In this document: positions 1,856 to 19,100 of the stretch, piece by piece
How positions within the stretch are numbered: the stretch's first letter is position 1
How the letters are laid out: each line of letters begins with the position of its first letter
NCBI RefSeq assembly: GCF_006345805.1
Contig: NC_043014.1
Coordinates: forward strand, 8,060,001 to 8,124,000
DNA: 64,000 bases
Origin: Octopus sinensis
Taxonomy: Eukaryota
Direction of reading: 5' to 3'
Program-made: the position numbers and the translations under genes
The notes under the pieces: generated by a model
The model's input: the letters and a program-made list of their open reading frames with translations, nothing else
Told to the model about the DNA's origin: nothing
The model's database searches: none

Positions 1856-1955
1856 AGCAACTTCAAGAGATAAAAAAAGTGACTATGGCTAATCTCTTGT
1901 GTCGTAACATAGATAGCTTAGGTACAGTGAAAACAAATGCTTTTGATATGAATTC
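1856..1955 (+). CDS. Penultimate exon of paralogous peroxidase-like gene: (E)QLQEIKKVTMANLLCRNIDSLGTVKTNAFDMNS
   Basis: catatttcag acceptor, gtaagt donor, 100 nt, phase 1-2. About 21/33 aa identical to exon 16870-16969. Confidence 0.92.
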
Positions 1956-2794
1956 GTAAGTATTCACTTCATCATTATAAGCAATAATGATTATTTTTAA
2001 TATTTTGTTTCCTTAATCGCGCACTCTTATTCTCTGAAATAAATTTATACTGACAATTATGTTCAAATTTCATGCATATTATGTATCGGAAATTAGGTAC
2101 TATTCAACCATTCCAGTGCAATGAATTCAGGTGAACATAGAATTCTTGAAAGTACAGAGGTTGATTAGTTAGATTAAACCCTTCAAATTGGTTCACAGTA
2201 TAGCCGCCATCAAGCAATGTAAAAGAAATTAAAATAGATTTTAAGGTCAAATTCCGATGTTACGTTAATATGATAACAGACATATTACTGACATTCATTT
2301 AAGCTGCAACCCCTCTCTAAATATAAGTCGTTGCAGTCGTCACCTACCACACCTGTCTCATCGACGGGGCTCTATGTGGTATAGATGCGTATCATGCGAT
2401 TTGTGCGGTTTTTCGAAAACAAGATGTATTTGACAAATTTGTTATGAGAATGTGAGTCTGGAATTTATTTTTCATATATATGGTATGTTGTAGACGGCCT
2501 TAAATTGATGTTAATAGTTTATTTTGTATTTTATGGTTTGTCTCGTATTCTATGTTATAAACAAATATTTTCCAGTTTATTTCTGTTTTATATGTTTGTA
2601 TGTTGTATTTGATGTTGTTCCTGTCTTCTATCCGACGGACAATTTCTATCGTGTAATTTAGATTATTGCTTATGTTACGTTGTAATATATAATTGTTGGA
2701 TATTTCTACATTGTTTTATTGTATGTGTGTTTTGTAGTATCTATGACATCATTTTTATTGCCAATAAATATTTTTTATTTATATTTGTGTACTA

Positions 2795-16100: not shown

Positions 16101-19100
16101 TCTTTGTGGAAAATAGCGATTTTGACGTCTATATCTAGCATGTTGACCGTCCACTTTTAGTGTTCAGTCCTTTTAACTTTGTGTGTAATTAAAATATATA
16201 TATTACACAAAAAATATATATTACACAAAAAATATATATATTACACAAGAAGGCGGCGAGCTGGCAGTAAGGCGGCGAGCTGGCAGAAAGGCGGCGAGCT
16301 GGCAGACAAGGCGGCGAGCTGGCAGAAAGGCGGTGAGCTGGCAGAAAGGCGGCGAGCTGGCAGAAAGGCGGCGAGCTGGCAGAAAGGCGGCGAGCTGGCA
16401 GAGACGTTAGCACGCCGAGCGAAGTGCTTCGCGGTATTTCGCCCGTCGCTACGTTCTGAGTTCAAATTCCACCGAGGTCGACTTTGCTTTTCATCCTTTC
16501 AGGGTCGATAAATTAAGTACCAGTTACGCACTGGGGCCGATGTAATCGACTTAATCCGTTTGTCTGTCCTTGTTTGTCCCCTCTATGTTTAGCCCCTTGT
16601 GGGTAGTAAAGAAACATATATATATTACACAAGTACATGAAAATGCATCTATATAAAGATTTTACCACACCTTCATCAATATTTTTTTACTTGAATTCAT
16701 AGCACTGTTATAATTGAATATTACGTAATTTCCGATACAAAAAGAATATACCTAGATTGGGTCACAACTGACATCAGTATAAAAGTATCTTAGAGTGTAA
16801 AAGTGTGGCGAGTAAGAGAAAAGGAATAAAAGAAACATTAGTGTTTATTATGTTGAAGTAAATACTCACGAAGTTTTATCAAAAGCAAACTGTTTTACTT
16901 GATCTAGATTGACCACGTTGCGGCATAATAGCTGAGCCATTGTCACTTTCCTGATCTCTGCAAGCTGGTCTGAAAAGGGGTAAAATAAGGGTTAGCAAAA
17001 ATAATAGAACAATGAACTACAAAGAAGAAAAATAAACCACGCAGTATTTCACATTATTAAACAATAGGCGCAGGAGTGGCTGTGTGGTAAGTAGCTTGCT
17101 AACCAACCACATGGTTCCGGGTTCAGTCCCACTGCGTGTCTTCTGCTATAGCCTCGGGCCGACCAATGCCTTGTGAGTGGATTTGGTAGACAGAAACTGA
17201 AAGAAGCCTGTCGTATATATGTATGTATATATATATATATATATATAATATATATATATATATATATATATATATATATATATATATATATATAATATAT
17301 ATATATATGTATGTGTGTGTATATGTTTGTGTGTCTGTGTTTGTCCCCCCAACATCGCTTGACAACCAATGCTGGTGTGTTTTCGTCCCCGTCACTTAGC
17401 GGTTCGGCAAAAGAGACCGATGGAAAATAAGTACTGGGCTTACAAAGAATAAGTCCCGGGGTCGAATTGCTCGACTAAAGGCGGTGCTCCAGCATGGCCG
17501 CAGTCAAATGACTGAAACAAGTATTAAAAAAAAGAACACACAAATATTGCATACAAAATGAAAGAAAACTATTCAAATGAATGACCACCTGGGCAGAAGT
17601 AGCAAATGCATACATCACCTCGATATCTGCAGAAATATCTAAATCACTCCAATGATGCCAACGCCAACAACGAAAGAAAGAATGAACTATATTGGGCATC
17701 CATCGTGCAACACGTCTTTACACAGTTCATCCTGACCGAGTTTGCATTCATGCTTCAACGTTGGCCACTATTTGGGTGTCTGGTATTTAGAATGTTACAA
17801 GGCGCACACTGCATTGTACCAGTTGGACAAATTCATTGACGGGAAAACAACTTTTATGGAGCGGGTAGTTGAAAGAATTAGCCACAATAGCCTAGAATTG
17901 ACTCCAGGTAGCGACAAAAGTAGTCTGGGTGATTTCTTCTGCAGAACTTTCAGGCCGAAGACAATAGACTAATTCCAAAATATTTAGCTTGGCAGTGCTG
18001 CAGATAACATTATTAGAGATAAGCTCTTTAGGCGTGAAAGCACCAACAGCCGAACTTGCCCGAGACTCATGCAGGAGGACGAAACCGTTCTGCACATAAT
18101 TGTTGAGTTTCCGTGCATTAACGACTTGTGGGCTCGTGTTGAGCAGCTGCAGTCTCGTGTAACACGAATTCCGCTGTCGGTCGAGTGGAAAGTGAAGCTC
18201 GATGCACCATCTTCCTTTGGCAGAGAAGGGAGGTAGATTTTTCTCCGACAAAAAAGGCTGTATAGGGGACCTGTCTGAAAGGTTTGAAGGCAAGTACTCT
18301 CCTATCTTGCCAAGCTCTCATCAATTTTTTTCAAATATCATTTGCAAAGGAAGGTGAGGGTGGAAAGCGGGGAGCTACATTCTTGTGTGTTTATCGAAAA
18401 ACTGGCTGAGAGTAAGTAACAATACTGATGAGGATGAATAGATCTATTCTAAGTGTTTTTCTAGACAGGAGGAAAGAAACTTTAGATGATAGTTATCCAG
18501 CGCATTTCGTGGGGATGGGGCAATTCCCTGAATTACCCTAATCAGACTATCCCATTTGGGGGTTCTATTCAGTAATTACATATTTTTCTAATTTCTATTT
18601 TCATATCCTTTTCTTATATCCTTATCGTTGTACTGTCTTCCTTTGAACGATGTAAACCCCACGTATTTGTGTGTACCTCGTCCTTTGAGATTGTCCTATA
18701 TTTCTTTGGCCCTTGTAGCCAATAAAAGAAATCATTTAGTTGTTGTTGTTGTTGTTCTGCTTCTTCTTCTTCTTTTTATTATTATTATTATTATTATTAT
18801 TGAGTGAGAGAGCAGTTCATGCCATCAAAGTGACACTGGGGTAAAATATACGAAGCCCAATATACCCATCATGACTACCCGTCTGATAAAGGTACACCAG
18901 GCACATGCATCACAACCATATGTGCGCGACATGGTGATCTCATATCAAGATAAACAGCACATGACCTTGCAGGTGGGGCCCAGTTAGAATTTTCTTCAGG
19001 TTGAGTAGCCCATCCCGCTCAAACGGTCCCTGAATAAGGGTTGTTTAAGGATGTTGAAAGAACCACTCATGCTTCCAGAGGTGAACTATTCAAACCCCAA

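Follow-up and report, generated by a model that had tools for sequence, protein, structure and literature searches.

In a 64,000-nt stretch of the Octopus sinensis genome (positions 8,060,001 to 8,124,000 of contig NC_043014.1 in the RefSeq assembly GCF_006345805.1, with the same positions on the plus strand of chromosome record CM016876.1 in GCA_006345805.1; hereafter the window), the 3' ends of two peroxidase-like genes on opposite strands face each other. These genes, denoted below the plus gene (XP_036366834.1, protein P0029) and the minus gene (XP_036366593.1, protein P0001), are very probably complete, convergent paralogs that belong to an octopod-restricted chromosomal cluster derived from molluscan 'chorion-peroxidase-like' heme peroxidases with a C-terminal TSP1 module. 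The feature is a real, ordinary clustered gene family that has already been annotated automatically, if imperfectly.

The two genes match exon by exon at their 3' ends (Table 1). Each of the two penultimate exons opens with two bases that close a split codon and closes with two bases of a Ser codon, which in both genes is completed by the first base of the terminal exon. In the plus protein, the An_peroxidase domain ends in (K)QLQEIKKVTMANLLCRNIDSLGTVKTNAFDMN(S), the product of the penultimate exon, which the O. vulgaris protein CAI9737356.1 (P0030) matches with 97% identity in a tblastn search. Between the two genes, 20 of the 32 whole codons of this exon specify the same amino acid, or 21 of 33 (64%) if the shared split Ser is included. 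In the terminal exons, seven cysteines occupy the same offsets (4, 13, 32, 42, 50, 52 and 62) in an ungapped alignment, and the spliced C-terminal peptides are 53% identical over 104 residues without gaps (BLASTP, E=3e-39), a likeness far beyond chance. The two stop codons are 8,929 nt apart. The preliminary description of the window, which had reported two plus-strand exons mirroring the last two exons of the minus gene, with a shared 100-nt penultimate exon in equal phase, about 64% amino acid identity in that exon, seven cysteines aligned without gaps and stop codons about 8.9 kb apart, was borne out in every element when the splice sites were read directly.

The two plus-strand exons are exons 12 and 13 of a complete, 13-exon gene encoding a 625-aa protein. 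Exons 1-11 are located on the plus strand at window-relative positions -30638 to -4396, that is, 4.4-30.6 kb before the window (1016-27258 of the locus of XP_036366834.1, L002, which overlaps window positions 1-5615 exactly), and the gene spans 8.029-8.064 Mb on the plus strand of CM016876.1. All its exons were recovered by a tblastn search of P0030 against L002 joined to the window; after junction refinement, the junctions are of the GT-AG type and the frame of 625 aa is uninterrupted. The O. vulgaris ortholog, P0030, is itself a full-length 625-aa protein whose coding sequence maps exon for exon. A second O. vulgaris protein, P0009, is 100% identical to the plus-strand fragment over 46 residues, and its 90% cluster also contains CAI9737356.1 and O. 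sinensis XP_036366834.1. The RefSeq model of the latter (512 aa) occupies CM016876.1:8,038,347-8,055,615 on the plus strand and ends 4.4 kb before the window.

The minus gene is contained entirely within the window (57093-12800; 8.073-8.117 Mb, minus strand) and consists of 13 coding exons, which were placed using motif scans, splice-site tables, P0001, the O. vulgaris model P0002 and junction refinement. The locus of XP_036366593.1 (L001) is the exact reverse complement of window positions 2800-52482, and the translation from the Met in exon 4 onward is identical to P0001. A split start codon is common to the minus gene, the plus gene and a third O. sinensis paralog, P0003, and exons 1-2 likely encode an N-terminal signal peptide, with the same sequence in the plus gene and in P0003.

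The correspondence extends over the whole length of the two genes. All boundaries and phases are equal in the 12 exons compared, and corresponding exons of the plus and minus genes have either the same length or lengths that are a multiple of three apart (110/113, 93/96 and 421/445 nt), with the exception of exon 3 (149/148 nt); the terminal exons are 337 and 343 nt long. The proteins are 47% identical (290 of 614 positions), and the nucleotide identity of the exons ranges from 51 to 82%. Residual similarity of the introns is detectable, with z>10 in 9 of 24 flanks of 200 nt each. An 862-nt alignment with 73% identity spans exon 12, and its most similar part is a short interspersed nuclear element (SINE). 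Gene conversion around exon 12 was considered and dropped, given that the high-identity part is the SINE and that comparable flank similarity is seen at many other exons.

In O. sinensis, CM016876.1 also carries P0003 (7.946-7.979 Mb, plus strand), and synteny with O. vulgaris places a further paralog upstream of the minus gene, for a cluster of at least four paralogs on this chromosome. There are four family members, along with the outlier P0031, on one contig in O. bimaculoides and three on one contig in Argonauta (Argonauta hians), and relatives are present in O. vulgaris as well. Thus, at least three paralogs are found within a few hundred kb on one chromosome, and this clustering, which we used as the mark of a clustered family, is conserved across species. 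In a profile search, the family is sharply delimited: its members score at least 654 bits, the next protein, O. bimaculoides P0031, at most 308, and proteins of other mollusks at most 272. The local expansion of peroxidase-like genes that the preliminary description had proposed is therefore real, and the condition it had named as refuting, a lack of further family members, fails on the members found in O. sinensis and in three other taxa.

The same convergent, tail-to-tail pair is present on O. vulgaris chromosome OX597833.1, in an independent assembly. When a tree was built, as had been suggested, neighbor-joining analysis joined the plus gene first to O. bimaculoides P0004, with a bootstrap of 100, and next to P0003, with a bootstrap of 81; the minus gene grouped weakly with the Argonauta sequences. 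The plus gene is therefore closer to P0003 and P0004 than to its convergent neighbor, and the pair does not descend from one private inverted duplication. Of the old inverted duplication originally envisaged, the age, supported by the 47% protein identity and by the presence of the pair in O. vulgaris, and the inversion both stand, and the single private event does not. As a nuance to the supported reading, the pair probably arose through several old rounds of duplication, one of them with an inversion. Repeated local duplication plus one inversion would produce a tail-to-tail pair before the split of O. sinensis and O. bimaculoides, with both copies keeping the ancestral 13-exon structure.

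The O. vulgaris model P0002 (875 aa) fuses the ortholog of the minus gene with its upstream neighbor paralog; it leaves out exons 10, 11 and 13, although the O. vulgaris genome contains all three, and translates exon 2 out of frame. The paralog that forms the N-terminal half of this model is located at about 10001-60000 of the O. vulgaris locus L004 and, in O. sinensis, past window position 64000. Unlike other family members, it still has the distal His (FGLFLMHD) and the distal Arg (DDRINE), and a His occupies the proximal position (KLAVHS); it may be the least degenerate member of the family.

The minus protein belongs to the animal peroxidase fold and scores 181.6 bits on the Pfam An_peroxidase profile (PF03098; cutoff 25 bits, E=3.1e-53). 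The plus-strand fragment within the window matches positions 502-530 of the same profile with 14.4 bits, below the cutoff, and the full plus protein is 47% identical to the minus protein. A phmmer search of the minus protein against PDB yields lactoperoxidase and myeloperoxidase matches down to 1e-22. The AlphaFold2 model of this protein, based on a 57-sequence alignment, has a predicted local distance difference test score (pLDDT) of 93.4 and a predicted template-modeling score of 0.91; in a Foldseek search, it matches lactoperoxidase with a template-modeling score of 0.72 (E 3e-22), and DUOX1 is also among the structural matches. Together, these comparisons show that both proteins carry a predicted lactoperoxidase-like domain.

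The residues responsible for heme binding have been replaced in both proteins, as indicated by alignment with canonical molluscan, crustacean and amphioxus peroxidases and with lactoperoxidase. Instead of the distal motif GQ(F/W)xxHD, in which the His stands with Gln and Asp and which reads GQFVSHD or GQFLSHD (GQFxSHD) in canonical mollusk proteins, the minus protein has FGKLLMFD and the plus protein FGTLLKFD, with the distal His replaced by Phe. The distal Arg of GDxRxN(E/Q) is replaced by Ile in both (GDTISEN in the minus and SDPINKN in the plus protein). The proximal His of AAFRFGHS, lost in the minus protein and in the corresponding plus segment SVAYELALAS, has given way to Ala or Val. The supporting Asn/RGRDHG motif (canonical IQRGRDHG) is lost in both as well, the respective segments being TQDTRFYG (minus) and TQDSRFLS (plus). 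The calcium site (canonical TxxxDxS) is kept as THVIDAS in both proteins, and so is the C-terminal pair of cysteines (LLCRN...(V/I)SCS, aligned to LICDN...VDCS of lactoperoxidase). The ligand losses are common to the close relatives in O. sinensis, O. vulgaris, O. bimaculoides and Argonauta hians, the exception being the N-terminal half of P0002. The preliminary description, which could not see the catalytic exons of the plus gene, had left open whether this paralog is heme-less too. Scoring the ligands in both genes answers this question: the plus protein also lacks the distal His, the distal Arg and the proximal His and is therefore heme-ligand-less like the minus protein. Accumulated substitutions at these positions suggest that heme binding has been lost in both proteins. 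Rather than oxidizing substrates, they would act as secreted, non-catalytic 'pseudo-peroxidases' through binding, for example, in adhesion, in the matrix or in recognition.

The first cysteine encoded by the terminal exon is the canonical C-terminal cysteine of animal peroxidases, as shown by the lactoperoxidase alignment. The following approximately 55 residues can be aligned, position by position, to the pattern W-S-x-W-S-x-W-S-x-C...R-x-R-x-C...C-G...C found in the tails of canonical mollusk peroxidases. The Trp, the Arg and six Cys align in register, and the WxxW motif is reduced to WTPF in the window tails. Tails of related proteins are recognized by Pfam TSP_1 (PF00090; cutoff 21.6), namely, those of Solemya P0032 (28.4 bits) and O. 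bimaculoides P0031 (22.6 bits). Conversely, a hidden Markov model of the C-terminal region of the family matches the TSP_1 regions of P0032 (3e-9), P0031 (2e-7) and P0033 (2e-5), as expected under common descent. The AlphaFold2 model of the isolated tail has a pLDDT of 82.8, and many of its top Foldseek matches are TSR domains (C8, Unc5A, Sema5A TSR3-4, MIC2 and properdin), though all of them at E>=0.2. From these alignments and profiles, we conclude that the cysteine-rich module is probably a degenerate TSP1 repeat, whose descent from TSP1 is supported and which lies outside the formal boundaries of the Pfam TSP_1 family.

The last approximately 45 residues are confidently predicted by AlphaFold2 to form three helices, and this predicted tail appears to be specific for the family. 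An exhaustive search of 1.84 billion representatives with a two-sequence profile of the tail retrieved only four proteins: O. bimaculoides P0013, Argonauta P0006, P0144 and, weakly, a sponge giant protein with multiple TSRs, the only non-octopod match. P0144 is a 112-aa open reading frame from public read assemblies (contigs of up to 1.6 kb) with a family-type terminal exon and presumably comes from another octopod.

The best matches outside octopods are molluscan 'chorion peroxidase-like' proteins with TSP1 (Solemya velum P0032, Mizuhopecten P0036, Liolophura P0038 and Sinanodonta P0033 and P0034), which are 24-28% identical to the window proteins and share with them the An_peroxidase domain, the conserved Cys and the subsequent W...C...R.R.C...C.G...C module in the same register. 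Unlike the window proteins, they keep GQFxSHD, GDxRxNQ, AAFRFGHS and QRGRDHG, and therefore presumably are real heme enzymes; they also have a recognizable TSP_1 domain and lack the helical tail of about 45 residues. The O. bimaculoides 'chorion peroxidase' P0031 (780 aa) has, like the family, lost the distal and proximal His; it shares a chromosome-scale contig with the O. bimaculoides members and has a TSP_1-positive tail. However, both the distal Arg and RGRDHG are retained, the N-terminus carries a long extension and the helical tail is absent; the protein is only 27% identical and falls outside the family clade. Precedents for non-oxidative reuse of this fold exist. In vertebrates, the peroxidasin-like protein PXDNL has the animal peroxidase fold and has lost peroxidase activity (PMC8533639), and this gene encodes the endonuclease PMR1 (PMC4937341). 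PXDNL/PMR1 and the peroxidase-homology domain of mammalian DUOX resemble the window proteins in having the fold without peroxidase activity but are of independent origin, have LRR/Ig/vWFC or membrane NADPH oxidase architectures and are not tandemly expanded. Nothing in the window proteins suggests a nuclease activity like that of PMR1. The crustacean peroxinectin, a distant match (P0139; PDB 6erc), is a secreted invertebrate protein of the same family and a precedent for a role in adhesion; in contrast to the window proteins, it keeps the heme ligands (FRFGHT) and the activity and has neither a TSP1 module nor a helical tail.

The two genes differ sharply in their divergence between O. sinensis and O. 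vulgaris, which was compared over 1,878 nt of coding sequence for the plus gene and 1,324 nt (5 of 13 exons) for the minus gene. The plus gene shows 47 differences, 44.5 of them non-synonymous and 2.5 synonymous, which corresponds to a non-synonymous rate (dN) of 0.031 and a synonymous rate (dS) of 0.006, a ratio of about 4.9 (binomial p=0.001-0.005). The surrounding non-exon DNA has diverged by 0.98% (330 of 33,510 positions), so dN is about three times the non-exon divergence (0.031 vs 0.0098; Fisher p=1e-9). In the terminal exon of the plus gene, all 6 substitutions are non-synonymous, and there are 2 differences in 1.8 kb of the adjacent intron. The changes are clustered at residues 100-107, 245-260, 465-480 and 602-622. 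In the minus gene, there are only 3 differences in 1,324 nt (Poisson p=0.001 vs the non-exon rate), and its terminal exon is identical to that of O. vulgaris; the coding divergence of the two genes differs with Fisher p=2e-8. These observations indicate that the plus gene is under positive selection and that the minus gene is nearly invariant under constraint. The asymmetry, which is the most interesting feature of the locus, argues that both genes are functional.

Several observations weigh against the interpretation of the pair as complete paralogs of this ancestry. Both public models are incomplete: XP_036366834.1 is truncated at both ends, missing the signal-peptide exons at its start and exons 12 and 13 at its end, and XP_036366593.1 begins at an internal Met in exon 4 (42482) and lacks exons 1-3. 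The join between exons 11 and 12 of the plus gene is predicted from the GT-AG sites, the frame and the O. vulgaris gene model. With the frameshift in exon 3 of this assembly, the minus gene may not encode a secreted, full-length protein. The window tails give no match to Pfam TSP_1 at E<=10, and the TSR matches in the Foldseek search with the isolated tail all have E>=0.2, none of them significant. The grouping of the minus gene with the Argonauta sequences has a weak bootstrap of 51, and the apparent loss of heme binding is deduced from residue substitutions. Finally, no publication on these octopus proteins was found in the literature, including the octopod venom-genome paper. Papers on octopus ink, salivary gland and oviducal gland mention 'peroxidase-like' or 'chorion peroxidase' transcripts, which cannot be tied to these genes.

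With these reservations, the alternatives fare worse. The current annotation gives the plus-strand exons the appearance of an orphan 3' fragment, the dead remnant of a partial inverted duplication, inasmuch as XP_036366834.1 stops before them and the gene table of the assembly has no gene over window positions 2800-12799. This is, however, next to inconceivable given the 11 upstream exons with GT-AG junctions, the unbroken 625-aa frame through both exons and the annotation of the O. vulgaris ortholog as this very protein. The preliminary description had named a lack of upstream peroxidase exons on the plus strand as the finding that would undo the pair; the tblastn search of the flanking scaffold, of the kind it had proposed, turned up these 11 intact exons, so the orphan-fragment reading fails and is already refuted at the level of the genome sequence. 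Even harder to credit is the idea that the segment was duplicated and inverted recently or was mis-assembled as a palindrome. The convergent orientation and the abundance of repeats (SINEs and microsatellites) beside both copies would fit, but the copies are just 47% identical in protein and 51-82% in exon DNA, and the arrangement recurs in the O. vulgaris assembly, where each copy has its own ortholog. It is also very unlikely that the two proteins are still heme peroxidases using non-canonical ligands. Such a possibility is raised by the confidently predicted peroxidase-like fold, by the survival of the ester-link Glu in the minus protein (GDTISE) and by the N-terminal half of P0002 with its distal His, distal Arg and proximal His; it has to contend with the simultaneous replacement of the distal His by Phe, the distal Arg by Ile and the proximal His by Ala or Val and the loss of the Asn/RGRDHG motif in both window genes and in every close relative from four species. 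No animal peroxidase is known to work without the proximal His.

Two further alternatives concern the history of the individual copies. Gene conversion from a paralog, or sequence errors, rather than positive selection, could in principle have produced the amino acid excess in the plus gene, considering that the differences are clustered, with exon 9 accounting for 22 and residues 245-260 for 8, and that paralogs are nearby. We regard this as improbable: a 60-70%-identical donor would import many synonymous changes, and only about 2.5 of the 47 are synonymous; the flanking introns are 97-99% identical and collinear; and the differences are substitutions, not indels of the kind that long reads produce. 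A more serious, if still rather doubtful, alternative, and one compatible with the family explanation, is that the minus gene has only recently become a pseudogene in O. sinensis, through a frameshift that cuts off the signal peptide and the N-terminus. Exon 3 lacks 1 nt relative to O. vulgaris (GTG between 45973 and 45972, where O. vulgaris has GTGG), although the two sequences are otherwise almost the same over the 210 nt aligned, and exon 3 of the paralog is 149 nt long against 148 nt here; because this deletion shifts the frame, the RefSeq protein is forced to start at the internal Met. The other 12 exons are nevertheless intact, the 3 differences from O. vulgaris in the five exons compared are below the expectation from the intron rate, and an in-frame alternative donor is available at 45948. 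Moreover, the two assemblies often differ by single-base indels within short runs, with 2 such cases in 1.8 kb of intron, and an assembly error is therefore plausible for the deletion in exon 3. Complete convergent paralogs in an octopod cluster thus remain the best explanation for the locus.

The intergenic space between the two genes contains one additional candidate 3' coding exon for each of them, known from O. vulgaris gene models only (Table 1). If both of these exons are used, only about 1.8 kb would separate the ends of the two transcription units. Donor-like sites are present inside both terminal exons, in the D-F-C-(K/T)-Y codons, at 3570-3585 on the plus strand (TTTTT/GTAAGT) and at 13100-13085 on the minus strand (TTTTT/GTACGT), and P0009 appears to splice from the internal donor of the plus gene, dropping the TSP1-like module and the tail. 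Most of the intergenic space consists of long, impure (TA)n/(CA)n/(TATG)n microsatellites (3950-5560, 7000-7900, 9270-9980 and 11080-12620), with a G+C content down to 24-26% in 2-kb windows; arrays of this kind follow both terminal exons at a distance of no more than about 100-150 nt.

A SINE precedes exon 12 in both genes, in the same orientation relative to the gene. Outside the internal (TA/CA)n run, the two copies are approximately 93% alike, far more than the flanking intron (about 72%), and are therefore probably independent insertions into a T-rich tract. Other copies of this element are found elsewhere in the window, for example, at 39670-39365 and 32179-31748, and ARAGORN detected no tRNA or tRNA-like SINE heads. 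Fragments of long interspersed nuclear elements (LINEs) are located in two introns of the minus gene; exons 3 and 9 lie about 4.3 kb closer together in O. vulgaris, a difference that points to a species-specific LINE copy.

Table 1. Features of the convergent gene pair in window coordinates; a slash marks an exon boundary or the splice site.
Feature	Position	Strand	Remarks
Plus gene, exon 12 (penultimate), 100 nt	1856-1955	+	tttcag/AGCAAC...GAATTC/gtaagt
Plus gene, exon 13 (terminal), 337 nt	3535-3871	+	stop TGA 3869-3871 included; Cys-rich degenerate TSP1-like module (probable), then helical tail (predicted)
Minus gene, exon 1, coding end	57093-57089	-	ATGAG/gtaagg, start codon
Minus gene, exon 2, 51 nt	52224-52174	-	probable signal-peptide core; 51-nt counterpart in plus gene
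Minus gene, exon 3, 148 nt	46063-45916	-	CNN motif; 1-nt deletion; 149 nt in plus gene and O. vulgaris
Minus gene, exon 4, 180 nt	42529-42350	-	FGKLLMFD instead of distal GQFxxHD motif
Minus gene, exon 5, 19-nt micro-exon	41742-41724	-	encodes (A)DVCCD(S); 19-nt counterpart in plus gene
Minus gene, exon 6, 113 nt	41193-41081	-	
Minus gene, exon 7, 96 nt	37816-37721	-	THVIDAS, retained Ca-binding motif
Minus gene, exon 8, 57 nt	31500-31444	-	
Minus gene, exon 9, 445 nt	29896-29452	-	GDTISEN (distal Arg to Ile); proximal His lost
Minus gene, exon 10, 195 nt	28190-27996	-	QDTRFYG instead of canonical QRGRDHG
Minus gene, exon 11, 161 nt	25094-24934	-	
Minus gene, exon 12 (penultimate), 100 nt	16969-16870	-	ttttcag/ACCAGC...ACTTC/gtgagt
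Minus gene, exon 13 (terminal), 343 nt	13142-12800	-	stop TAA 12802-12800 included; gene of XP_036366593.1
Alternative 3' coding exon of plus gene	8945-9019	+	O. vulgaris isoform model P0009; tblastn 96% over 25 aa
Alternative 3' coding exon of minus gene	10799-10876	-	O. vulgaris model P0002; tblastn 100% over 26 aa
SINE with internal microsatellite	1371-1785	+	about 70 nt upstream of plus exon 12
Copy of the same SINE	17070-17523	-	about 100 nt upstream of minus exon 12
Two partial LINE copies, near-duplicate, in tandem (RVT_1, zf-RVT)	33123-37374	-	intron 7 of minus gene, sense
LINE fragment (RVT_1/zf-RVT)	44616-45080	-	intron 3 of minus gene, sense

Altogether, gene duplication routinely yields convergent pairs of paralogs that imply a cluster, and automatic public annotations already exist for the two genes. 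What lifts the locus modestly above the routine is the pseudo-enzyme character of its proteins, together with their TSP1-derived tail and the strong positive selection seen for one copy. The public gene models are faulty in three ways, namely, 5' and 3' truncations in O. sinensis and the fusion of two genes in O. vulgaris, all of which can be corrected from the exon tables. The pattern of this family, tandem expansion with strong positive selection on one member, is typical of venom, reproductive or immune proteins. Because the plus gene is under strong positive selection (dN/dS of about 5) while its convergent neighbor is frozen, it can be tentatively proposed, as one possibility among others, that these octopod-specific, tandemly expanded, secreted pseudo-peroxidases, devoid of heme ligands and equipped with a degenerate TSP1 repeat and a new three-helix tail, might have been recruited to binding or recognition in an arms race, be it in saliva or venom, in egg-coat or sperm interaction, or in immunity. 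The ratio of 44.5 to 2.5 in the plus gene is among the strongest pairwise signals of positive selection that sibling species can give and makes this gene a concrete candidate for functional work in cephalopods. The family as a whole represents a clean natural case of an enzyme fold turned non-enzyme, in which Octopus and Argonauta have alike conserved the fold together with its calcium site and disulfide framework.

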